DNA of 64,000 nt, taken from IMG/VR virus record IMGVR_UViG_3300034012_003212, positions 124,001-188,000 of that record, one strand, 5' to 3'. The notes under the pieces were generated by a model. That model was given only the letters and a program-made list of their open reading frames with translations, had not been told where the DNA came from and searched no databases. Numbering within the stretch: position 1 is the first letter of the stretch; every line of letters starts with the position of its first letter. Positions 6,138 to 64,000 of this stretch are shown in pieces. The translations under genes were made by a program, and so were the position numbers.

Positions 6138-6542
6138 TTAGTCTTTTTTGATCATGGCTTCTATTTCCTTGAGCTCCTTTAGAAGTTCTTCCTGGTACAA
6201 TTCTTGCATGGATTCCATGTCCTTTGTTGATAATTTATTGAGCGTCATAAACTTATCAATCGCCTCCTTTGAGACTTTCTTCTTCTCCTTCTCATGCTTC
6301 TTGGTCTTTGTGTACATCCACACAGGAACTTTTGTGTAGAGCCGTGACATGGCATCTTTCCACACATCGACAACAATCCTGGGGTCAATGTTACGATTAT
6401 TCAAAACATTGGCATGCACCGGGAACTTTATACTCATGAACCTGTTCACCATGAATGAGTTCCTTGATTTATCCATATTGGAAACTTCATTCCAATTCGA
6501 ACCGCGATCGAATAGTCTTTTTGTGAGATCAAACAGCTCCAT
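6138..6542 (-). CDS. Clamp loader small subunit (gp62-like)
   Basis: SFMVNRFMS motif, size, and a gp44-like gene nearby. Confidence 0.6.
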   Translation of the reverse strand: MELFDLTKRLFDRGSNWNEVSNMDKSRNSFMVNRFMSIKFPVHANVLNNRNIDPRIVVDVWKDAMSRLYTKVPVWMYTKTKKHEKEKKKVSKEAIDKFMTLNKLSTKDMESMQELYQEELLKELKEIEAMIKKD

Positions 6543-8241
6543 GTTTAGTCCTCTTTATTATTATACGTTTTAGATATGATTCTGGTAGGTACCTTGCGCT
6601 CGCCAGTTGATCAAAACACTCATCGAGTATGTATGTAATGGCCCAATCGTCATAGTTCCTTATACTCCTTCCTATGCCTTGTATGACGCTGTTAGCCGTA
6701 CGCGACATGTACTTCTCGGGATATAATTCCAGGAGCTTCTTGATAAACTCATCTGATATGTTAGGAAACGGAACTTTAAAGAACACCTGGAACCTTGAGA
6801 GGTCGTCGTCAAAGCTCAGACCTTCTAATAATGATGGTCCAATGAGTATACTCGACTTCTTGCTCTTAAAAAGATCTATGGCAAATGATTTTTCTTTTGA
6901 CGAGTCATATGTGATCATCCTATGGCTCTGTGAACTTCCTTGTATTATCTGTTTTGCCATCGAAAAACTACCTGTATGTATTATACCACGATCCTCCGAG
7001 TGTTTATCGATGATTGCATCACAAATCTTCAAAACCTTCGGGAAGTTCTCTTCCCGTTTTCCATAGTTCATCTTGAAGCCTCGTACGTAGAATATCGGGC
7101 TCTTTGAATGATCGAACTGGTTATCTATCGAAATGTATTCGTAGTCGTCGAGGCCTATGAACTTTGCAAAATTTTCAGGATTCCCCAGAGTCGCACTCAT
7201 GAACACGCGGAATTTTGAATTATCGATGAGTGTCTTTCGTATGAGCCCAGTTTCTTCTAGATTCTTAAAAGATGCAGATGTGTCATCTCCTGGCTCAATT
7301 ATCCGAACAAGGTTTTGTTCATCTGTGATGAATTTCACATAATCTTCTATCTTGCAGTGAACATCGCTTATTCGGTCTATCTGCCATTGCGCCTTTGATA
7401 TGTGCCCAGGAACAGGGGTACCGAATGGCCATTTATTAGAACAATGATATTTAAACTTTTCTTTTGTTGAGCTCAGCATGTTTTTTAACACACCATCAAG
7501 AGAACTGAGTGATTTTAGTATGTCCCCGTTCAGCTGGGTCTTCATACATGTTTCTATGAGCTTCCTTGAATCGCCCGAAAAGTCCTCAGTAGAATACAGC
7601 TCTTCCGAGAATGTGGTGAGAAAATCTCTGATCATGTCGGCGAACTTATATCCAATCCTCGGCGTGTAATGGGATTGTACTATAGACTCGATCTTATGAG
7701 CCTCATCAAAAAAACAAAAATCTCGAATGCCAAAATCTGTGTTGGTTTGTAGGTAGTTGAGCTGCAGGAGCCAATAACTGTAATTCAAGAGCGCCGTATT
7801 GGATGTGGCTGCGATTTCCTTCTTACTGTAATATGAGCAATCACCATAACAACTAAGAAACCTAGGGTTCTTTGCCTTCATCTTACACTCCCCGAGGGAA
7901 ATCTGCATCCCGTTGATTTCGCAATTGTAATTATCCATTCCACGTACGCTCGGGATTCTAAGACCTAGCCTCTCGATATCACGCTCATACTGATCCTGGA
8001 GTCCAAGGTCAGATGTTAGGATGTAGCCGGTCTTTCCCATCTTATTGAACAGGAGACTACCGATGAGGGACAATATGCTTTTTCCTGTTCCAGTGGGTGC
8101 ATCTATAAGGAATGATGCGCTTGGATTCCTGTCCATCCTTTCGGCCAGGCGCATTATCGTTTCTTCCTGGAATGGTCTGAATCTGAACCCCTTATCACGG
8201 AGTTCAGATATCGCGGCATGCAGCTGTGTTTCTATATTCAC
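6529..8241 (-). CDS. DinG/Rad3-family SF2 helicase
   Basis: APTGTGKS, DEAH, MSAT, EGLSF and QGIGRSIR motifs; Cys cluster consistent with an Fe-S domain. Confidence 0.9.
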   Translation of the reverse strand: MNIETQLHAAISELRDKGFRFRPFQEETIMRLAERMDRNPSASFLIDAPTGTGKSILSLIGSLLFNKMGKTGYILTSDLGLQDQYERDIERLGLRIPSVRGMDNYNCEINGMQISLGECKMKAKNPRFLSCYGDCSYYSKKEIAATSNTALLNYSYWLLQLNYLQTNTDFGIRDFCFFDEAHKIESIVQSHYTPRIGYKFADMIRDFLTTFSEELYSTEDFSGDSRKLIETCMKTQLNGDILKSLSSLDGVLKNMLSSTKEKFKYHCSNKWPFGTPVPGHISKAQWQIDRISDVHCKIEDYVKFITDEQNLVRIIEPGDDTSASFKNLEETGLIRKTLIDNSKFRVFMSATLGNPENFAKFIGLDDYEYISIDNQFDHSKSPIFYVRGFKMNYGKREENFPKVLKICDAIIDKHSEDRGIIHTGSFSMAKQIIQGSSQSHRMITYDSSKEKSFAIDLFKSKKSSILIGPSLLEGLSFDDDLSRFQVFFKVPFPNISDEFIKKLLELYPEKYMSRTANSVIQGIGRSIRNYDDWAITYILDECFDQLASARYLPESYLKRIIIKRTKHGAV

Positions 8242-51035: not shown

Positions 51036-51533
51036 TTACCACTCGGATCCACCGATGAAACGATTAGCTGCGTTTCGGCCTTCGATGTGTGTCTGCATTG
51101 CTTCTTCTACGCCAATACATTCTGCCAACATCTCTCGCCAATTGGGCCAGATGCTTTCATCGATGAAGCTAAGATCGCAACCGGTGAAATTTGTCCCCTT
51201 TCCGTACCTAGAAAGATAGAATGAAGGGATATTATCTGTTCCCGGCTGTGTTGCGTCTAATCCCTTACAGTAGGAAAAATCAGCACCGGAGAAATCACAA
51301 CCTTCCATTTTAACATTGGTGAAATCAGAACCGGAGAATTTTGCGTTTACAAAAGGACCGCTAAGTTCAGCACCATCAAGTATAGCACCTTCGATCTCCG
51401 TAACAAAGTCCGGGCCGAAGTATGTTTCCATGATTTCTTCCTTTGTCATAGCCTTTACCGGGGGTGTTGTTTCTCCCATTTCATTTTCGTTCATGCGGAT
51501 GAATGAACTGAAAGTTTTTACGTGTTTTGCCAT
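51036..51533 (-). CDS. Pentapeptide-repeat protein with capsid-targeting-like N-terminus
   Basis: Starts MAKHVKTFSSFIRMNEN; AKFSG SDFTN CDFSG ADFSY repeats. Confidence 0.7.
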   Translation of the reverse strand: MAKHVKTFSSFIRMNENEMGETTPPVKAMTKEEIMETYFGPDFVTEIEGAILDGAELSGPFVNAKFSGSDFTNVKMEGCDFSGADFSYCKGLDATQPGTDNIPSFYLSRYGKGTNFTGCDLSFIDESIWPNWREMLAECIGVEEAMQTHIEGRNAANRFIGGSEW

Positions 51534-56131: not shown

Positions 56132-56611
56132 TCATACGATTGGTTTTCTCACAGACGCGTTGTCTGCCTTTCGGGCGTCGGCATTATCACATCCTGTGAG
56201 GTTTATGTATTCCATCACGACTGCGTCATCTGGAACACCCCTTATGTTTTCGCAGTCCTGCGCGTCCAGGCAGCCGCCCACTCGCAGGAAGTCTCCCGAT
56301 AGGGAAAGTGATGTGCATCCTCTTGCCAGTATGTCAGAGAGCACGACTGTGTTCCTAGGAAGGCTTTCCACGCTCCTCGATCCAGAGATGTACAGACCAT
56401 CTCCCACGATCATTCTTTCGGGCATTGTTTTCAGGTTCTCACACCTGAAGAATATGGCCGCTTTTGAGACCATGACATTTTCAGGGAGCATGCGTAGATC
56501 ATCGTTCTCCCAGCACCAGAGCTCTCCGAGGATGTTCATCCTTCCGCCGATGGAGTCAAACACTCCTTGTGGGCACTTTCTCATGTTCACTATCGCATTT
56601 CTCGTGTGCAC
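56132..56611 (-). CDS. Degenerate LRR-like protein
   Basis: LPENVMV, MPERMIVGDGL, LPRNTVV and VPDDAVV repeats. Confidence 0.6.
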   Translation of the reverse strand: MHTRNAIVNMRKCPQGVFDSIGGRMNILGELWCWENDDLRMLPENVMVSKAAIFFRCENLKTMPERMIVGDGLYISGSRSVESLPRNTVVLSDILARGCTSLSLSGDFLRVGGCLDAQDCENIRGVPDDAVVMEYINLTGCDNADARKADNASVRKPIV

Positions 56612-56622
56612 TGTCTGGGTCC

Positions 56623-57090
56623 TTATAATTTGTACTCGATTTTGTCCTTGAACTTTTCAGGTATGGGAAGTTTTTTAGGAATTACACTCAGTTTAACGCC
56701 CTGGCAGAATCCGGTGCCTTTCGAGCATATGATTTTTCCGTTGATGACTGATCGTTCATCGATTTCTTTTATTCCGGCGCAGTTCTGAATGTCCAGGTCC
56801 TCGCATATGATGAGTTCTTCCGGAAGTTTTTTCACCCCGCGGGAGTAGGCCATTATCAAGCTGCCGAGGGTGATCAACGTTCTGGGTAAAAATCCTGACA
56901 CATGGAAAAACCAGAACGAGCCACTGCATATCACCGTCTTCCTCGAAAATGATTCAGGAAGGTCTGCGACGTTGGCATGGATCGACCCATCGATCTTTAT
57001 GGTATCAGGGAGCAAATCGAGCGTACTTTTGCTGCAGAACGAAAGCGTCACCTGAGCGTATTTTTCTATCTTTTGATTCCGAATATTCAT
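56623..57090 (-). CDS. Degenerate LRR-like protein
   Basis: LPDTIKIDG, LPRTLITLGSL and LPEELIICEDL repeats. Confidence 0.6.
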   Translation of the reverse strand: MNIRNQKIEKYAQVTLSFCSKSTLDLLPDTIKIDGSIHANVADLPESFSRKTVICSGSFWFFHVSGFLPRTLITLGSLIMAYSRGVKKLPEELIICEDLDIQNCAGIKEIDERSVINGKIICSKGTGFCQGVKLSVIPKKLPIPEKFKDKIEYKL

Positions 57091-57571: not shown

Positions 57572-58006
57572 TTAAGAGTCCCTCTGTATATTCAGCAGGT
57601 GGTCCTCTCGAACGATGCTGAACTTTCCTGGATTCATCGAATGGTTCAATTTCATGATCAACTCACCTGCGATGGATGATCTTTTTTCTCGAATGATGAT
57701 CATCATCTTTTCTGCGAAGATGTGGTTCTCGATTATTCTGATGTAATCAGGGATCTCCCGTTCGTGTAGGTCGTACCTGTGAGTCTGATCCATCACGTTT
57801 ATCGATATGGTCCTCAATTTCGGACAGTGGTCCCCTTGCGTGCTAAAAATTCCAGGAACATGGGAATTGCCCTTCACGATGGCGAGTGAATCAAGGTCCG
57901 ATTTCCACGGGGATTCAAATTCCCCTTTTACCTTGAAAACCTCCGGAAGTGATATGTTTCCTGCGTGCTTGATGCTGAATTTGGAATTGGTTTTGATTTT
58001 TAGCAT
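57572..58006 (-). CDS. Hypothetical protein (divergent member of the LRR-like family)
   Basis: LPEVFKVKG motif. Confidence 0.5.
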   Translation of the reverse strand: MLKIKTNSKFSIKHAGNISLPEVFKVKGEFESPWKSDLDSLAIVKGNSHVPGIFSTQGDHCPKLRTISINVMDQTHRYDLHEREIPDYIRIIENHIFAEKMMIIIREKRSSIAGELIMKLNHSMNPGKFSIVREDHLLNIQRDS

Positions 58007-58065
58007 GCCCTATTCTCTGTGTTTTTCCCTCTTTTGAGATCATCCGGCTTCACGTTTCACACTGA

Positions 58066-58554
58066 TCAGTCCCTCCTGATCAACTCAATCCTGTAGCTTT
58101 GCTTGATAATCGATTCCATGGAATCATATAGGTCCTCATAACGAGCGCCCGTGGCTGAATGTATGATCCTCTGCATCACTTTCGAGTCTTCGTTTGTCGG
58201 AGGATTCATAATAGTATGCATTGAAAAAGAATCTGAGATGATCATACGAGATAGGATCTGGTGGTACCTCTTCTGGAGCACTCTGTTTGAAGATATGGAA
58301 TTCAAAGATTGGTACAGAAACATCGTCCGGCAGACGATGCTTGGAGACTGGCTGTCGTTCATGATAAAATCCATGCAAAACACCCGGCAGACGGATCCAT
58401 CAAGTTTACCGATGACTCCACTGGACTGATCATGCACATAAATGACGCCTGACACTTTCATGGGCTTCTTCAGCCTCAGTGATCCAATGTCACGGAGCAC
58501 CACTGTTGCAACGGCTCTTTTGATGTTATTAAATCTTGTAACTCCAGAATTCAT
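58066..58554 (-). CDS. Hypothetical protein (divergent member of the LRR-like family)
   Basis: KPMKVSG motif; GATATATAC at 58559-58567 precedes MNSG. Confidence 0.5.
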   Translation of the reverse strand: MNSGVTRFNNIKRAVATVVLRDIGSLRLKKPMKVSGVIYVHDQSSGVIGKLDGSVCRVFCMDFIMNDSQSPSIVCRTMFLYQSLNSISSNRVLQKRYHQILSRMIISDSFSMHTIMNPPTNEDSKVMQRIIHSATGARYEDLYDSMESIIKQSYRIELIRRD

Positions 58555-58840
58555 ACTCGTATATATCAAACAGTGTCAAAAGTAAGTTCTCGTGGATCCA
58601 GGAGAAAGGTGTTCAAAATCTGGACAAGCAGGAGAAAAAAAAATTTTCCAGGGAAAAAAACAGAGGAGCTCTTCTGCAGAAGAAAGGGGAAATAGAACCC
58701 AGGGAGAAAAAAAAAATTTTCCGGGCTGAAAAAAAGGATTCCCTTTTCCTGGCAGGAACTGGATACTGTTGGGCCCCTTTTGACGGATATGTGATGATCA
58801 GATGGAGCATGGGAAGTGGGAGATCTGATGGAGCTGATGT

Positions 58841-58905
58841 AAAGGGGAAAAGGGTTCTGGAAAGGGAAAAGGGAAAAGGGTTCTGGAAAGGGAAAAGGGA
58901 AAAGG
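58841..58905 (+). repeat. Purine-rich GGG-tract repeat (G-quadruplex-forming pattern)
   Basis: GGGAAAAGGG/GGGTTCTGGAAA units giving seven G3+ runs. Confidence 0.75.
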
Positions 58906-58962
58906 ATTTTGCGGAGGGGTTAAGGCCCACCCTACCATAGTGAGCCTCCCGGGCGATAGTCC

Positions 58963-59051
58963 TTTTAGCCTCCCTGGGGCCCTCCCTGGGGCCTCGTTTT
59001 TAGCCTCCCTGGGGCCCTCCCTGGGGCCTCGTTTTTAGCCTCCCTGGGGCC
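58963..59051. repeat. 35-bp tandem repeat with five CCTCCCTGGGGC cores
   Basis: TTAGCC recurs at 58965, 59000 and 59035. Confidence 0.9.
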
Positions 59052-59135
59052 TATCCCCTGCCGCACTCTGGGAGGCCTGCCACGCGCTTTCTGGCCGCTT
59101 CTGGCCTCTCCTGGCTGTGGAATGCACTGGAATCA

Positions 59136-59540
59136 TCACTCCTGGGAGCTTCGAGCGAATGTGACGTATTCCCCTGCTATCCCTATGAGCCCGTCCAGCG
59201 AAAGTTTAACGTCAGAAGACCTGTCCAGGAACTCGTCAAGTTCACGATGCATCCCAGAGGACTCGAGAGCGTTCATGACGCCCAGTATTATGGCCGCTTT
59301 GGAATTGTAGAATTCCCCTGAGGGGTTCATCACGTCTGCGCTTGGTTTGTTCATTTCTGCCTCCTGGTGTTCTTCTTTGTTCACGTAAGGTTCCGGCGTT
59401 TCCAGAACCATCCAGGCCTGCCCTGGGAGCACATTGTAGTAGTACGTCATGACTAGCATGTTCCTCGACCATGTCCAGACGAGGTCGCACCACGGAGCGT
59501 CTTCCCTCGACGGAGGTCTGTCGGTTATCCACTCACTCAT
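59136..59540 (-). CDS. MSEWITDR-family (DUF551-like) protein fused to an unrelated C-terminal domain
   Basis: Family N-terminus and PEPYV linker. Confidence 0.7.
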   Translation of the reverse strand: MSEWITDRPPSREDAPWCDLVWTWSRNMLVMTYYYNVLPGQAWMVLETPEPYVNKEEHQEAEMNKPSADVMNPSGEFYNSKAAIILGVMNALESSGMHRELDEFLDRSSDVKLSLDGLIGIAGEYVTFARSSQE

Positions 59541-59913
59541 TGTTCAGCTCCTTATGATAGTTGAGTAAAAGTTTACGCACACGGCGTGCGGCTTCGATGG
59601 CCTGTTCTGAGGTTTGAAAGCAGTTGCCGAAGTTGTATTGTTTATCATCAATTTCCAAAAAACTATACCGCCAAAGTACTCCTCCGGTATAATCTATTTC
59701 CCAGTAATACTGATTGGGGGAAGGTTTCCACCGCTTAGGCTCTGAATTTCCGCCTGGCGCGGTCTTGTTTCTTCTAATCCAAGGATTTCCTAAACAAAGA
59801 TCGGAGTAAAAAATATCGTATACATATGATTCTTCGTCAATTGTCCAAACCATTCCATCATCATCCGCATCCGCCTCCGTCGGCAGCCTGTCGGTTATCC
59901 ACTCACTCATCAT
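59533..59913 (-). CDS. MSEWITDRLP-family protein (two-domain form)
   Basis: WKP...GNCFQT.EQA.EAARRVR.LLLNYHKEL C-terminus. Confidence 0.75.
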   Translation of the reverse strand: MMSEWITDRLPTEADADDDGMVWTIDEESYVYDIFYSDLCLGNPWIRRNKTAPGGNSEPKRWKPSPNQYYWEIDYTGGVLWRYSFLEIDDKQYNFGNCFQTSEQAIEAARRVRKLLLNYHKELNNE

Positions 59914-59923
59914 CGCCTCCTTG

Positions 59924-60379
59924 TTAAAACTGTGTTGAACTATTTATTATTGCATTGTTCAAGTTTGCACCACTCAAGTCTGCATAAATCAAGTATGCGC
60001 CACTCAAGTTTGCACCACTCAAGTTTGCACCACTCAAGTCTGCACTGACCAAGTCTGCACCACACAAGTCTGCACCATCCAAGTCTGCACTGACCAAGTC
60101 TGCGCCACTCAAGTTTGCACCACTCAAGTCTGCGCCATCCAAGTCTGCACCACACAAGTCTGCACCACACAAGTCTGCACCTCTCAAGTCTGCACCTCTC
60201 AAGTCTGCACCTCTCAAGTTTGCACCTCTCAAGTCTGCACTGACCAAGTCTGCACCTCTCAAGTCTGCACCACACAAGTTTGCACCTCTCAAGTCTGCAC
60301 CATCCAAGTCTGCACTGACCAAAGTATCTGTGTCAACTGTGTGGATTACTGTACCAAGCGTGTTCTTTATCTCAATCAT
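59924..60379 (-). CDS. Pentapeptide-repeat protein
   Basis: Over 20 A(D/N)Lxx repeats encoded by 15-bp DNA repeats. Confidence 0.92.
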   Translation of the reverse strand: MIEIKNTLGTVIHTVDTDTLVSADLDGADLRGANLCGADLRGADLVSADLRGANLRGADLRGADLRGADLCGADLCGADLDGADLSGANLSGADLVSADLDGADLCGADLVSADLSGANLSGANLSGAYLIYADLSGANLNNAIINSSTQF

Positions 60380-60391
60380 TGCAGTAGCTCC

Positions 60392-60610
60392 TTATGATAG
60401 TTGTGTAATGTCTCGCGCACACCGCTTCGGCTCTGGCTTGACGTATGGCTTCGGCGGAACGGGCTTTGGCTTTGGCGCCCAAACTTCGCCAGTCTGTATA
60501 TCCTCGTAATGACATCGCATTACCTCACCATTACTGCCTGCCAACCACACCTTATATTCCTCATCCGCATCTTCTTTCGTCGGCAGCCTGTCGGTTATCC
60601 ACTCACTCAT
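60392..60610 (-). pseudogene. MSEWITDRLP-family protein with an internal out-of-frame deletion
   Basis: EPKR is joined directly to DNA encoding VRETLHNYHKELLQ in another frame. Confidence 0.6.
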
Positions 60611-60980
60611 TGTTCAGCTCCTTGTGATAGTTTAACAATGTCTCACGCACACGTTGTGCGGCTTCTTCGGCTTGGGCTTGGGTTTGAAAGCAGTTGCCGA
60701 AGCTGTATTTTTCTTCATTAATTTCTGTGGGCAAAAAGCATTTGCACACTTCTCCATTGGTATTCACCATCCAATGATGTTCATACGGGAGAGGCCTCCA
60801 CCTCTGCGGCTCTGGCTTAACGTATGGCGCGGGTGTTTGCATCGGCATCCATGGCATCCGAATTAGCACGCGGGTATAGTGTATACTTATAACAGTGCCG
60901 TCATTACACGACGCCCATACATATCCTGAATTGCCTGCGTCCGCTTCGTTTGGATGTCTATCTGTTATCCATTTGGCCAT
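60603..60980 (-). CDS. MSEWITDRLP-family protein (two-domain form)
   Basis: MAKWITDRHP...LLNYHKELNNE. Confidence 0.75.
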   Translation of the reverse strand: MAKWITDRHPNEADAGNSGYVWASCNDGTVISIHYTRVLIRMPWMPMQTPAPYVKPEPQRWRPLPYEHHWMVNTNGEVCKCFLPTEINEEKYSFGNCFQTQAQAEEAAQRVRETLLNYHKELNNE

Positions 60981-61350
60981 TTAACAACTCCTTGTGATAG
61001 TTGAGTAAAAGTTCATGAATGCGACGTGCAGCTTCTTCTGCTTGTTCTAAGTTTTGAAAAACATTGCCGAAGTCGTATGCTCTACGAGCATCTTGGCCGC
61101 CATAATAATTCGTATTGAGCGTCTCGCCGAACCAGCTGATGTAATAGTACAAACTTTCAACCTCAGGCTTCCACCTCTGCGGCTCTGGCCTGACGTATGG
61201 CTTTGGCGGTGATATTTCCATCCAGGGCATGCCAAGTTTAATTTCTGAACGTCTTCTTAAACATGGCGTGCCTTTTTTTACCTGAGACCACACAAGACCT
61301 GAAAATCCCTCTTCGTATTCAGGCAGCCTGTCGGTTATCCACTCAATCAT
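60958..61350 (-). CDS. MSEWITDRLP-family protein (two-domain form)
   Basis: MIEWITDRLP; GGAGG upstream. Confidence 0.75.
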   Translation of the reverse strand: MIEWITDRLPEYEEGFSGLVWSQVKKGTPCLRRRSEIKLGMPWMEISPPKPYVRPEPQRWKPEVESLYYYISWFGETLNTNYYGGQDARRAYDFGNVFQNLEQAEEAARRIHELLLNYHKELLNGQMDNR

Positions 61351-61582
61351 TGTACCTCCGTGATACATTATTTGCATAATATGAAAAAGAGCCTGGGTCT
61401 ATGCCATCGCGAGACGGTACGTATGGATCGGGTTCATCGATAATCATCCATGGCTGACCCTCGTAAACACATGTAAAATGAGTTTGCTCCACCGTACCTT
61501 CGTTAGTTGTTACCCAAACAGTAGTGCCTGTATATTTTATTTCATCTTGATTTGGCAGCCTGTCGGTTATCCACTCACTCAT
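61343..61582 (-). CDS. MSEWITDRLP-family protein (single-domain form)
   Basis: Family N-terminus and PDPYV linker. Confidence 0.7.
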   Translation of the reverse strand: MSEWITDRLPNQDEIKYTGTTVWVTTNEGTVEQTHFTCVYEGQPWMIIDEPDPYVPSRDGIDPGSFSYYANNVSRRYND

Positions 61583-61660
61583 TTGTTTCTCTCCATATTT
61601 TTTAAGACGTAAATTATTGATGCAAATACACATATAATGAATACTGATACGACATCATGT

Positions 61661-62044
61661 TCATTCAGCATTATTTAACTCCTTATGATAGTTGAGTAAA
61701 AGTTCACGCACGCGGCGTGCTGCTTCCTGGGCTTGGGCCTCTGTTTGAAAGCAGTTTCGACTGTGGTAATAACTCATATCGGAGTTATTACCTGTCCATT
61801 GTAACAGTATCACCCCGGTGTGTTCCACTGCCCAATAACTCTGATCAGTCTTAGGCTTCCACGGATCTGGTTCTACACTGGGTTTGATGTAAGCATCAGG
61901 CTCTTTTATTGGCATCCAAGGCTGATTTACTTCCACTGTAGTGTAGTCTGCCCAGTAAACAAACCCATTTTCCGTTATCCACACTTTCTTGAGTATGTCA
62001 CTGTCCCGATCCGTCGGAAGTCGGTTGGTTATCCACTCACTCAT
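61661..62044 (-). CDS. MSEWITNRLP-family protein (two-domain form)
   Basis: AGGAGG upstream; conserved C-terminal block. Confidence 0.75.
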   Translation of the reverse strand: MSEWITNRLPTDRDSDILKKVWITENGFVYWADYTTVEVNQPWMPIKEPDAYIKPSVEPDPWKPKTDQSYWAVEHTGVILLQWTGNNSDMSYYHSRNCFQTEAQAQEAARRVRELLLNYHKELNNAE

Positions 62045-62273
62045 CTGTTTTCCCTCCTGGATTGTCGCGACTTCCAAATTTCAGCTCATGTAACTCGTGG
62101 TATATTTTAGCGTGTCGTTCGAATAAATGTATGGCAGTATTTAGCATCTCTCTGAGGTACAACTCATTCATAATATCAAGGTCGTGAGAATATGATCTGG
62201 CCTCAATCATGATGGCCTGTACATGTTCCATCACGGCGATCGAGAACGAAGGTTTATTCTGAGTCATGATCAA
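62037..62273 (-). CDS. Hypothetical protein
   Basis: 78-aa ORF coupled to its neighbours. Confidence 0.55.
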   Translation of the reverse strand: MIMTQNKPSFSIAVMEHVQAIMIEARSYSHDLDIMNELYLREMLNTAIHLFERHAKIYHELHELKFGSRDNPGGKTDE

Positions 62274-62424
62274 ACTCCATTATTTTAAAAATGATGAACA
62301 CGATGAACTTCCCTATCCAGTATAGCCCACATGTGATTCCAGCAATTCTGAAAAAATGCATGAAATCACTGGACACTTCCCATGCGATCGATGCCATGAG
62401 CACACCCATCAATATGTACATTAT
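62254..62424 (-). CDS. Small two-TM membrane protein
   Basis: MYILMGVLMASIAW...GLYWIGKFIVFIIF; start uncertain. Confidence 0.45.
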   Translation of the reverse strand: MMYILMGVLMASIAWEVSSDFMHFFRIAGITCGLYWIGKFIVFIIFKIMEFDHDSE

Positions 62425-62533
62425 GGTGTAGTGTATCGCTTGATCCGTTCCTCTCGTACGGGCCTTGCTATTCCGCGCATGACGCCTCCAAAAAATTAGT
62501 GTGAAACGTTGAACTGTTGCGATCTGTCTTGTG

Positions 62534-62541
62534 CAAAAATA
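62534..62541 (-). promoter_or_regulatory. Bacteroidota-type -7 promoter TATTTTTG
   Basis: TAnnTTTG followed by CA, with AT tracts upstream; heads the paralogue array. Confidence 0.55.
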
Positions 62542-62661
62542 CAAAAAAAACGTGAAAGTTTTCAATTTTTTTATTTTTTGGAAAAAAAATATCCGCACGG
62601 AAGATCAGGCCAGTAGCTCCTTTTTGTAGTTGGAGCGCAGTTCACGAATTCTGTGCCTGGC

Positions 62662-62877
62662 TTATTCTGCGTGATCCTCAAACCACTCGATCCCGCAGAA
62701 GTAGATTTCCCCATCTTCTGCCAGAAAATGGGTTATCCCGTGTGACCAAGATGGGTAGTGAACTTTCATGAGTTCATGATCCTCTCCGTTTATTGGCGTC
62801 ACATCCCCGAAATCTTTCAGGTGGAATTTCCTGTTCTGGAGATACTTCGGAGTTGGACCTTTGTGCCATTTTTCCAT
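62662..62877 (-). CDS. Hypothetical protein
   Basis: 71-aa ORF. Confidence 0.55.
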   Translation of the reverse strand: MEKWHKGPTPKYLQNRKFHLKDFGDVTPINGEDHELMKVHYPSWSHGITHFLAEDGEIYFCGIEWFEDHAE

Positions 62878-62895
62878 GATTCTAAAGTATTTGTG

Positions 62896-63174
62896 TTACA
62901 ACCGTCCTTTGACCTTCCACCCATATTGGAGGTTAAACATTCTCACGGCTTCTTTGCTCTTGTACTTTGGCTCTCGGAAAGTCTTGGAATATGAATCAAT
63001 CATCCACTCCATGAAAGACCTTTCTTCCTCTAGTGTCCACTCTCGGAGCGCGTACCACTTGTCCTGCTCAGTGAACGCAGGGTCATAGCCGCTGAACCCC
63101 ACACGGCGGAACATCTCGTCGAGGGCTATTTTGCGGAAGTCTTCGATCTTCTTCTTTACATCGAGTGTGCTCAT
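62896..63174 (-). CDS. Hypothetical protein
   Basis: Likely start MSTLDVK; W-rich small phage protein. Confidence 0.55.
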   Translation of the reverse strand: MSTLDVKKKIEDFRKIALDEMFRRVGFSGYDPAFTEQDKWYALREWTLEEERSFMEWMIDSYSKTFREPKYKSKEAVRMFNLQYGWKVKGRL

Positions 63175-63179
63175 ATAGT

Positions 63180-63839
63180 TTATTCCCAATTGTTGTTCTC
63201 TACACGTGATTTTGCAGACTCCCTATCCACAAAAGTTCCAACATACTTAAACGAACGTTCTGCTCGAGACCATAATGACACGCTACATTTTCCGCTGTTT
63301 CGTTCCATACTTAGTTCTGCAATGACCTGTCCTTTTGCGTCTATTGCGAACATATTAAATAATCCTTTTTCTTTCCAGGTGATTGTGCCCGGATACTCAG
63401 GATCTGTGGTAAATTTAGTGGGTTTACTTTGTGCATAGCGAAGATTGTTGTTGATTGCGCGGATCCACTCTTTGCACTGAAATATGATGTACTCCCTCAA
63501 TTCTGGTGTTAAAAGACCTAAACCATGGTCGTAGCTCAGACAAACGTTCCCGATAAAATTATCATCAGTAGGAACGCTATAGGGCGTCTCCGTATTGCTG
63601 TTATCTTTTGTTTTTTGTGGTTGTTGATCTTCGTTAATTACATGGCCCTCTGGCGGTACCGGAGGCTCTGGCTTGACGTATGGCGCGGGTTTATTTGCAA
63701 TAGTTTGCCACGGTGTACCAAGTTTTACTTGATCAAACTGCTCAACATATACGTATCCGTCGCAATCTGAGATCCATACCTGTCCGTGAATATCAGAATT
63801 TTCTACATTTGGCAGCCTGTCTGTTATCCACTCACTCAT
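63180..63839 (-). CDS. MSEWITDRLP-family protein fused to unrelated domains
   Basis: Family N-terminus, PAPYVKPEP linker, AGGAGG upstream. Confidence 0.7.
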   Translation of the reverse strand: MSEWITDRLPNVENSDIHGQVWISDCDGYVYVEQFDQVKLGTPWQTIANKPAPYVKPEPPVPPEGHVINEDQQPQKTKDNSNTETPYSVPTDDNFIGNVCLSYDHGLGLLTPELREYIIFQCKEWIRAINNNLRYAQSKPTKFTTDPEYPGTITWKEKGLFNMFAIDAKGQVIAELSMERNSGKCSVSLWSRAERSFKYVGTFVDRESAKSRVENNNWE

Positions 63840-64000
63840 TTTCGCCTCCTAAAAAATTAAATTCTTTTGTTTCTTGCCTATTCCATCTGTCAATGAGCAT
63901 ATTGATATGCATCAGATGAAATTCGCCTTTTGTCCCTCTGAACCTGTCTGCACTCATCATACTATATCTCGTGGATAAACGCTTAGTCCCGACGTTTTGT

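Follow-up and report, generated by a model that had tools for sequence, protein, structure and literature searches.

Background

Phage genomes are mosaics. In the modular theory of lambdoid phage evolution, short conserved sequences flanking exchangeable modules are proposed to serve general homologous recombination, but this classical proposal has few clear examples, because such sequences are usually not found at mosaic joints (PMC3029335). A constant-variable-constant layout within a single phage gene is seen in the T-even tail-fibre adhesin gp38, in which conserved glycine-rich motifs delimit hypervariable segments and are proposed to mediate swaps. In polymorphic toxin loci (CdiA-CT, Rhs) a conserved motif-coding sequence precedes variable C-terminal modules, truncated orphan remnants sit downstream, and exchange is by homologous recombination at the conserved sequence. 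In integron cassette arrays, co-oriented small genes are separated by a recurring junction. DUF551 (Pfam PF04448) is a portable phage domain found in Ea22 variant V2 of Stx phages, in YfdS of prophage CPS-53 and in MazZ-type pyrophosphohydrolases (PMC10834534).

Here an array of eight small genes that resembles each of these systems in part is analyzed. It lies within a 64,000-nucleotide stretch (the window; positions 124,001 to 188,000) of IMG/VR record IMGVR_UViG_3300034012_003212, a virus record of 260,658 bp that is 88% complete and comes from lake or freshwater samples. TerL, PolB, RNR and helicase genes identified it as an uncultured jumbo phage. A preliminary description from the sequence alone had proposed a recombination-driven diversifying array, in which conserved junctions act as both crossover sites and translational couplers, with no dedicated recombinase visible in the window.

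Results

Organization of the array

The array that the preliminary description reported was confirmed. Eight genes beginning with MSEWITDRLP or a variant of it were found on the minus strand at 59136-63839, and a profile HMM of the N-domain detected exactly these eight in the whole 260,658-bp genome. Each full gene had the layout constant 5' block, variable N-core, constant linker (PYVKPEPxRWKP), variable C-core and constant 3' block. The C-terminal types were as previously stated: four copies had a common C-domain, two had unrelated C-termini that gave no hit to the C-domain HMM, and two had none.

Copy 1 (63180-63839, 219 aa) contained a tentatively DUF551-like N-domain and the PYVKPEP linker, followed by an alternative C-terminal domain. 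Copy 2 (61661-62044, 127 aa) contained the N-domain and the common C-domain, and was modeled by AF2 with a pLDDT of 85; its ATGAGTGA also held the stop codon of the unrelated upstream 78-aa gene (62037-62273). Behind the 3' junction of copy 2 was a hydrophobic mini-ORF of 30 aa (61579-61671), whose ATG lay 7 nt after AAGGAG and whose stop overlapped the next start as ATGA; a homologous peptide forms the N-terminus of the family protein P0201. Copy 3 (61343-61582, 79 aa) contained the N-domain only, and ended in what looked by eye like a degenerate 3' junction (GGAGG-N4-ATGATTGA) that overlapped copy 4 by 8 nt. Copy 4 (60958-61350, 130 aa, MIEWITDRLP) and copy 5 (60603-60980, 125 aa, MAKWITDRHP) each contained the N-domain and the common C-domain, and copy 5 had the most diverged 5' block.

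Copy 6 (60380-60610; ORF 60392-60610, 72 aa) was found to be an internal deletion derivative of a B-type two-domain gene, in which the N-domain and linker are fused out of frame to a remnant 3' block (60380-60425), and its dN/dS was raised compared with its orthologues. The ATG of a pentapeptide-repeat gene (59924-60379, 151 aa) lay 7 nt after the remnant AAGGAG. The association with pentapeptide repeats recurred in a fusion protein (P0182) and in the neighboring gene of another contig (L006). Copy 7 (59533-59910, 125 aa) contained the N-domain and the common C-domain, and copy 8 (59136-59540, 134 aa), the last gene of the array, contained the N-domain and a second unrelated C-terminus. Four unrelated small genes interrupted the array at 62037-63189. 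The orphan 3' block of the preliminary description was also real: it lay at 62605-62661, read ARHRIRELRSNYKKELLA*, and sat in frame directly after the stop of an unrelated 71-aa gene (62662-62877), with no ATG following its AAGGAG.

Conserved blocks and junctions

The 5' block, ATGAGTGAGTGGATAACCGACAGGCTGCC, occurred three times exactly, five times with at most 1 mismatch and six times with at most 3, while shuffled sequences gave none. The copies at 62044 and 60980 were more diverged. The 3' block, CTCAACTATCATAAGGAG, occurred five times with at most 3 mismatches against 0.05 expected, these being the four full C-domains and the remnant in front of the pentapeptide gene. An example of the 3' block (GNCFQT...AARRVRxLLLNYHKEL, with AAGGAG) lies at 59541-59625, with further copies at 60611-60695, 60981-61065 and 61672-61756. 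The linker block (PYVKPEPQRW) is exemplified at 60799-60836, with further copies at 60420-60457, 61172-61209, 63655-63692 and, in diverged form, at 59729-59766.

An ATG lay exactly 7 nt after AAGGAG at all five 3' blocks counted above, and overlaps of the form ATGAGTGA or ATGA occurred at six of the eight copy starts; the same was seen in relatives. Across junctions the AGT, AAG and GAG codons were invariant. The junction AAGGAG-N7-ATGAGTGA holds an SD-like motif, a start codon, and a stop codon in each of the other two frames. SD-like motifs preceded only about 20% of crudely called ORFs in this genome, however, so that use of the SD by the host is uncertain, and translational coupling is inferred from sequence architecture only.

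Two conditions that would have counted against the proposed interpretation had been named beforehand, namely that junction identity is explained by protein constraint alone and that array order is fixed in relatives, and neither held. Among codon pairs encoding the same residue in the window copies, 89 of 148 were the identical codon in the 5' block against 49 expected from codon usage, compared with 64 of 215 in the N-core against 77 expected. In 40 pairs that were divergent in both cores, from five contigs (the window and four others), the same-codon fractions were 0.63, 0.65 and 0.66 in the blocks and 0.83 at the SD part, against 0.41 and 0.47 in the cores. Overall the blocks gave 60-66% and the cores 30-47%, where codon usage predicted 32-43%; in the three blocks synonymous codons were kept about twice as often as expected (63-66% against 32-36%), and in the cores they were near chance (41-47%).

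Some of this conservation, that of the SD, start and overlapping stops, is better explained by selection on translation signals than by recombination. It is possible, though unlikely, that the blocks are conserved only because of protein function plus translation signals, and that the mosaics arise by illegitimate recombination followed by selection for in-frame products, so that the blocks mark tolerated joints and do not cause them. Consistent with this, the SD, start and stop part of the junction was the most invariant, and the deletion in the 72-aa copy joined the linker to the 3' block probably at a short CGGTG/CCGTG microhomology seen by eye, rather than at a long block. In addition, junction sequences were no more alike within a genome than between genomes, which also argues against simple intragenomic concerted evolution. 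However, synonymous identity was also doubled in the linker and in the 3' block far from any start codon.

A regulatory RNA element at each junction, such as a hairpin that occludes the SD and start, was considered very unlikely. In an alignment of 14 junctions, a consensus 7-bp helix (TTACTCA with TGAGTGA) enclosed the SD and start, and one column varied C/U opposite G. However, the consensus energy was only -5.9 kcal/mol, there were no compensatory double changes, single junctions folded no better than shuffles (z from -1.4 to +1.2), and a search of Rfam gave no match. Such an element would also not explain the linker block.

Reassortment of cores and fluidity of the array

Seven related contigs each had a different set and order of array genes. 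In 51 family proteins from metagenomes, N-core and C-core identities were uncorrelated (r = 0.06): 49 pairs shared the N-core only, 22 the C-core only, and 2 both, although these pairwise counts are not phylogenetically independent. The C-core of copy 2 was 87% identical to those of P0002 and P0004, while the N-cores were 26-33% identical. The alternative C-domain of copy 1 was found, at 93% identity, joined to a different N-core in P0200. Between two other array contigs, gene A-c1 of L004 and gene A-c2 of L005 were 97-100% identical in nucleotides up to the linker and then 27-47% identical, and the converse was seen between L009 and L018. Reassortment was also seen in codon tables of the copies. 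These transitions from 97-100% to about 30% identity ran across blocks with no indels, which is evidence against the view that the blocks are merely tolerated joints. Array genes were up to 88% identical in nucleotides, as for copy 7 and copies in L020 and L022, in contigs whose flanks are unrelated or only distantly related, which was taken as evidence of horizontal spread. Within allele types, dN/dS was mostly 0.1-0.9, indicating purifying selection.

Two identical 33-nt 5' blocks, at 59878-59910 and 60578-60610, flank a 700-bp segment that was absent from a contig of a strain about 95% identical (record 26 of sequencing run X5; joint 59877 to 60578, with 33 letters fitting either side). This was read as a crossover inside a block, and the 33 identical nucleotides at the joint also count against the view that the blocks are merely tolerated joints. 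That contig comes from a k=31 assembly of a mixed sample and the 33-nt repeat is just longer than k, so a chimeric path cannot be excluded. Chimeric joining of paralogs from several phages was also considered for the array itself. The short-read contigs of the runs compared (X2-X5) all broke at the repeated blocks, and no independent contig spanned 59547-60594. However, an independent 2024 run contained 93% of the sampled words, its contigs were 100% identical across 60594-63950, 59022-59547 and 60068-60608, and arrays with the same 8-nt overlaps recurred in many independent assemblies, making an assembly artefact very unlikely.

Recombination genes

A RecA/UvsX-like ORF (G000:249319-249885) and a 5'-3' exonuclease were found in the phage. 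No tyrosine recombinase (PF00589), serine recombinase or resolvase, or reverse transcriptase (RVT_1) was found in the 260-kb record, which is 88% complete. The layout is cassette-like, with conserved junctions and an orphan remnant, but a dedicated diversification system was considered the least likely explanation. For an integron, the IntI-type recombinase was absent from the record and the junctions showed no attC-like structure, folding no better than shuffles and with a weak consensus structure. For a shufflon or invertase switch, no invertase was found and all copies lay on the same strand, with only direct repeats covered by the repeat scan. For a diversity-generating retroelement, in addition to the absence of a reverse transcriptase, the cores differed by saturated divergence and were old and under purifying selection, rather than mutagenised.

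Discussion

The interpretation given in the preliminary description was supported by these data, with qualifications. The best explanation, in which we have reasonable confidence, is a tandem, co-oriented array of paralogous small accessory genes that appears to be translationally coupled and to evolve by general homologous recombination at conserved boundary blocks. Comparison of sequences showed that the three constant blocks keep synonymous sites about twice as well as the cores, and that N-cores, C-cores, alternative C-termini and whole genes occur in many different combinations and orders in different phages. That the 30-90-nt blocks are used as crossover points, both within a genome (unequal crossing-over, deletion, duplication) and between co-infecting phages, is inferred from these comparisons rather than observed, and the dependence of downstream on upstream translation is inferred from sequence architecture alone. 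In this view the linker inside the gene is as much a crossover site as the gene-gene junction, and the outcome is reassortment of long-lived alleles, each under purifying selection, across a phage metapopulation. "Diversifying" in this sense does not mean in-situ hypermutation or an integron-like cassette system.

The second role of the junction is likewise inferred. The sequence AACTATCAYAAGGAG-N7-ATGAGTGA places an SD-like motif in the K-E codons of the upstream gene, and the first 8 nt of the next gene hold its start and a TGA in each of the other two frames. An upstream ORF arriving in either of those two frames would therefore terminate at the start codon, which favors termination-reinitiation, while in the third frame it would fuse; natural in-frame fusions of this kind exist (P0053-P0056 and P0182). 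This compact plug-in unit may explain how unrelated small genes get slotted into phage operons and still get expressed.

The family has 574 representatives at 50% identity, is absent from Pfam, PHROGs and NCBIfam, and is a defined and tractable piece of viral dark matter, whose pattern of variation points to a role in an arms race. Our tentative suggestion for its function is early accessory proteins that bind variable host or competitor targets. A more speculative possibility, considered unlikely but not excluded, is that the three blocks are maintained by selection because they recombine. The family would then be a self-shuffling, two-slot combinatorial library (N-core alleles times C-core alleles, plus alternative C-termini and slotted-in foreign genes), shared by a metapopulation of otherwise unrelated freshwater phages, which would supply each phage with a changing set of binders against polymorphic host defences or competitors, and the portable junction would guarantee expression of whatever lands behind it.

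Comparison with known systems

The N-domain appears to be DUF551-like in predicted fold. Both are small domains of about 55 aa that begin W-I-x-[DE]-R-L-P and end in a W-x-P...P motif, and like DUF551 the N-domain occurs joined to many other domains and has no known function. Foldseek searches returned DUF551 proteins for residues 1-58 at E 0.02-0.7, and an ESM Atlas DUF551 cluster gave a TM of 0.58 over 47 residues, but the domains are short and both sides are predictions. Profile-profile comparison (hhalign) with three DUF551 sequences taken from genomes gave a probability of 89.7% (E 1.9e-6), with only 18 N-terminal columns aligned. The Pfam model (gathering score 22 bits) matched none of the eight copies at E ≤ 0.1 and none of 81 family representatives at E ≤ 0.01, and a six-frame search of the genome found nothing at E ≤ 10. 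The N-domain has one or two fewer residues between WI and RLP and a shorter core, and it occurs in tandem arrays with inferred coupling and as up to five repeats within one polypeptide. The C-domain is predicted to be a small beta-hairpin plus a long helix.

The array resembles integron gene cassettes in its co-oriented small genes, recurring junction and slotted-in unrelated genes, but its junctions are coding and exchange points also lie inside the genes. Polymorphic toxin loci share the conserved sequence before variable modules and the orphan remnants, but here there is no toxin or immunity signature and no large delivery protein, every copy has its own start, and the variable parts include the N-terminal core. 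The gp38 adhesin, in which recombination at the constant motifs is proposed to swap specificity segments, is a single structural gene with a known receptor-binding role, while this is a multi-copy array of small non-structural proteins. The array is closest to the old conserved-linker model of phage mosaicism, of which it is a clean example: conserved nucleotide blocks flank the exchangeable units beyond what the protein requires, and the same unit is found joined to different partners with identity switching at the blocks. What is different is that the linkers are explicit and measurable at synonymous sites, the reassortment they would promote is nearly complete, and they lie inside coding sequence at domain scale (about 100-nt cores), with one of them also carrying the putative translation signals.

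Genome context of the array

The window is part of a single virus record of 260,658 bp (G000, of which the window is positions 124001-188000), with a GC content of 41.6%. The record encodes a T4-type large terminase, a family-B DNA polymerase, a ribonucleotide reductase, a helicase, and a 5'-3' exonuclease. Its terminase was at best 36% identical to those of uncultured huge phages, Sphingomonas phage PAU, and Tenacibaculum phages, and the record therefore represents an uncultured jumbo phage. The sequencing runs that contain the region are lake-water and freshwater metagenomes. Codon usage across the genome was unusual for a bacterial virus: ATA makes up 56% of the Ile codons, and AGG is the most common Arg codon (34%). 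The array region (54-64 kb of the window) had a GC content of 0.43-0.48, compared to 0.38-0.42 over most of the rest of the window.

The array lies in a long run of small minus-strand genes without database annotation, which also contains three pentapeptide-repeat genes, a BRCT-domain protein, and a muramidase. Pfam, PHROGs, and NCBIfam gave no family for any of the eight copies or for the neighboring small genes. Two adjacent minus-strand genes of about 157 aa downstream of the array (56132-56611 and 56623-57090) were weakly similar to each other (E 0.001), and had an internally repetitive, LRR-like appearance and no family match. At 58840-59067, the ~530-nt gap just downstream of the array holds G-rich GGGAAAAGGG repeats and 2.7 copies of a 35-nt tandem repeat. 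These repeats form GC-rich hairpins followed by T runs on the plus strand, in other words, terminator-like elements facing the 3' end of the array. Promoter-like and terminator-like sites in 58000-64000 were not above shuffled sequences.

Pentapeptide-repeat proteins recurred around this family (59924-60379 and 51036-51533 of the window, 6412-6816 of the sequence L033, metagenome protein P0182, and 8309-8887 of contig L006). This part of the genome has three such genes, and in L006 one lies directly after a family gene. Elsewhere in the record, outside the window (L034, equivalent to G000:7001-19600), there were about 55 tandem units of 182-206 bp. Each resembles a mini-gene with an SD-like AAGGAAACAAGG, then a segment beginning ATGAACTTAGAGAA (MNLExV..KIGNSV), then 12-nt repeats that encode (W/R/K)(N/D)SV tetrapeptides, with no long ORF and no tRNA. 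One copy of this unit was found beside the WITDRLP array of another viral contig (L001:1009-1209).

Eight related genes with constant and variable segments

All eight MSEWITDRLP genes (numbered here from the 5' end of the array) are on the minus strand, and an HMM of their first 56 residues found exactly these eight in the whole genome. The 29-nt 5' block occurred three times exactly, five times with at most one mismatch, and six times with at most three, while shuffled sequences gave none. The 18-nt core of the 3' block occurred five times, against 0.05 expected. Four copies carry the common C-domain (...GNCFQTxxQAxEAARRVRELLLNYHKELNNE), two carry unrelated C-termini, and two carry none.

The 72-aa copy is not a designed gene with the N-domain only, but a B-type two-domain gene in which a deletion has joined the linker to the 3' block out of frame, and the third frame still reads GVRETLHNYHKELLQ followed by a stop. 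The 79-aa copy ends in what looks by eye like a degenerate version of the junction. The orphan block is real: at 62605-62661, ARHRIRELRSNYKKELLA and a stop codon follow directly, in frame, after the stop of an unrelated 71-aa gene.

The junction between genes

In sense orientation the junction reads AAC TAT CAY AAG GAG YTG AAC A-ATG-AGT-GA. AAGGAG was found 7 nt before an ATG at all five of the 3' blocks that are followed by a gene, and this gene was another family member in three cases, the pentapeptide gene in one, and a 30-aa hydrophobic mini-ORF in one. The mini-ORF (MLNEHDVVSVFIICVFASIIYVLKNMERNK, 61579-61671, minus strand) sits between copies 2 and 3 and overlaps both neighbors. A homologous peptide forms the N-terminus of metagenome protein P0201, where it is fused to part of the alternative C-domain and to an N-domain.

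The first eight bases of the family gene, ATGAGTGA, hold the start codon plus a TGA in each of the other two frames (ATGA and the TGA at bases 6-8). Six of the eight copies have an upstream ORF that stops inside these eight bases, and two of those upstream ORFs are unrelated to the family: the 78-aa gene before copy 2 and a 42-aa ORF before copy 1. This explains why Ser-2 is always encoded by AGT, the only Ser codon that gives both stops, and why the K and E of YHKE are always encoded by AAG GAG. In the third frame an upstream gene would fuse, and natural fusions exist. Metagenome proteins P0053-P0056 each gave two hits of the N-domain profile, which were read as two whole units fused in one polypeptide, and P0182 is a pentapeptide-repeat protein fused to the N-domain. 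Metagenome proteins P0057, P0085, P0126, P0151, and P0157, which are apparently G+C-rich relatives (Pro/Ala/Gly-rich sequences), carry three to five N-domain repeats in one polypeptide (GEWRNDRPP...), separated by Pro-rich linkers, so the domain also exists as an intra-protein repeat.

Coupled translation is thus strongly suggested by the architecture, but this is an inference from sequence alone, and SD-like motifs preceded only about 20% of crudely called ORFs in this genome, against 9% in a control window. An RNA element at the junction was also considered. The consensus helix was weak and contained no compensatory changes, single junctions folded like shuffled sequences, and Rfam gave no match, so this reading was rejected.

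Synonymous conservation in the constant blocks

To investigate whether conservation of the DNA exceeded that expected from protein constraint alone, codon pairs encoding the same residue were examined for how often the codon itself was identical. Among the eight window copies, the codon was identical in 89 of 148 pairs (60%) in the 5' block (codons 4-10), where codon usage predicts 33%; in 64 of 215 pairs (30%) in the N-core, where 36% is expected; and in 80 of 158 pairs (51%) in the linker, where 36% is expected. The test was repeated on ten full-length genes from five contigs (the window and four others), using the 40 pairs that were divergent in both cores. The same-codon fraction was 0.63 in the 5' block, 0.41 in the N-core, 0.65 in the linker, 0.47 in the C-core, 0.66 in the 3' block, and 0.83 in the SD part, with expectations of 0.32-0.46 for this set. 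The codons kept in the 5' block (ACC, GAC, CTG, CCG) are minor codons of this genome. The cores are saturated and the three blocks are not. The excess is real but moderate, and the pair counts are not independent. When NG86 was applied to the four full window copies alone, little difference between blocks and cores was seen (pS of 0.79 for the 5' block and 0.72 for the N-core), but those four include the most diverged 5' blocks, and it was the same-residue codon test on all eight copies and on the wider family that gave the clear signal.

Array content and order in related contigs

The array was not fixed in its relatives. Close family members occurred in about 50 metagenome protein clusters, and the N-domain profile found 574 cluster representatives at 50% identity. 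Exact-pattern scans for the junction found only 2 viral and 4 metagenome contigs, and a scan of genome contigs found 5 bacterial loci, including Stieleria, Kapaibacterium, and Rhodobacteraceae, which gave no clear indication of the host. Seven contigs with arrays showed the same 8-nt overlaps but different members and orders. For example, with letters denoting N-core types, contig L004 has A-c1, B-c3, C-c6, E; L022 has E, B-c3, A-c5, C-c6; and L018 has E, B-c4, D-long.

Identity profiles switched sharply at the blocks. L004 A-c1 compared to A-c2 of contig L005 was 97-100% identical up to the linker, then 27-47%, then high again in the 3' block, while contig L009 compared to L018 was 20-40% identical in the N-core and then about 100% for the remaining 400 nt. 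A histogram of identity breakpoints also clustered at block edges, but this is largely tautological and was not used as evidence. Over 51 unique two-domain proteins, N-core and C-core identities were uncorrelated (r = 0.06): 49 pairs shared only the N-core (at least 80% against at most 35%), 22 shared only the C-core, and 2 shared both.

The window's own genes take part in this reassortment. The C-core of copy 2 was 87% identical to those of metagenome proteins P0002 and P0004, which have unrelated N-cores. The alternative C-domain of copy 1 was 93% identical to that of metagenome protein P0200, which has a B-type N-core. Copy 7 was 88% identical in nucleotides to genes in contigs whose flanks show no nucleotide similarity and only a few distant protein matches to this phage.

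Alignment of contigs from four independent runs to the region gave several alternative joints. The clearest was a 1285-nt contig of a strain about 95% identical that passes from 59877 to 60578, omitting the pentapeptide gene and the truncated copy, with 33 letters that fit either side. These are exactly the two identical 5' blocks. Because the repeat only just exceeds the k of the assembler, this joint is suggestive rather than proof.

Mode of diversification

Hypermutation or positive selection of the cores was considered, but within each N-core type dN/dS was mostly 0.1-0.9, and only one close pair exceeded 1, with the truncated copy being the more relaxed. The cores are therefore old, functional alleles rather than hypervariable sequences, and the diversity is combinatorial. 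Site-specific or retro-mutagenic systems were likewise rejected, as searches of the record, which is 88% complete, found no tyrosine recombinase (integrase), no serine recombinase (resolvase), and no reverse transcriptase. No RecT was found either, while a RecA/UvsX-like ORF is present at G000:249319-249885, and general homologous recombination at the blocks is the economical mechanism. Junction sequences were as similar between genomes as within them, which fits exchange in a shared gene pool, plus selection on the translation signals, better than purely intragenomic gene conversion.

Predicted protein structures

An AlphaFold2 model of copy 2 (from a 52-sequence alignment) had a mean pLDDT of 85 and showed two small domains joined by a low-confidence Pro-rich linker. 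The N-domain is predicted to be a beta-hairpin domain, and the C-domain is predicted to have a beta-hairpin and a 25-residue helix. The N-domain retrieved DUF551 proteins in fold searches, and shared the N-terminal W-I-x-[DE]-R-L-P motif in a profile-profile comparison (90% probability, but over 18 columns). However, it failed the Pfam DUF551 model completely, and it is therefore called DUF551-like here, not a member. DUF551 is itself a portable phage domain of unknown function (PMC10834534). The C-domain matched many unannotated viral clusters at TM 0.85-0.94. In some matching Atlas clusters other members carry Tad2-like, DUF3310, or HP1_YO09 domains, but the aligned part is not shown to be those domains, so no function was taken from this. 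Solved structures gave nothing: the best hit of Foldseek against PDB had E 1.1 and that of the exhaustive VIA search had Z 3.8, and no solved relative of the C-domain was found. The position among small accessory genes, the recurrent companionship with pentapeptide-repeat proteins, the extreme reassortment, and the horizontal spread make host-interaction or anti-defence roles the best guess, and this remains a guess from context alone.

Comparison with known systems

The observation made in the preliminary description, an array of eight genes with conserved DNA junctions and exchangeable C-terminal domains, was confirmed. Its interpretation, that of a recombination-driven diversifying array in which the junctions act both as crossover sites and as translational couplers, was supported in substance, as neither protein constraint alone nor a fixed order in relatives, the two outcomes that had been named as evidence against it, was found. 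This support is qualified in that the linker is a third crossover block and the diversity is reassortment of old alleles across phages. While the excess synonymous conservation and the reassortment were seen directly in the sequence comparisons, recombination at the blocks, coupled translation, and any role of the proteins are inferred.

What is new is an undescribed family, the constant-variable-constant-variable-constant layout at domain scale with near-complete reassortment, and the dual-purpose junction. The array works like the conserved boundary sequence model of phage mosaicism (PMC3029335). It also resembles motif-mediated swapping in T-even adhesins and orphan-module exchange in polymorphic toxin loci. 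It is not an integron, a shufflon, or a DGR.
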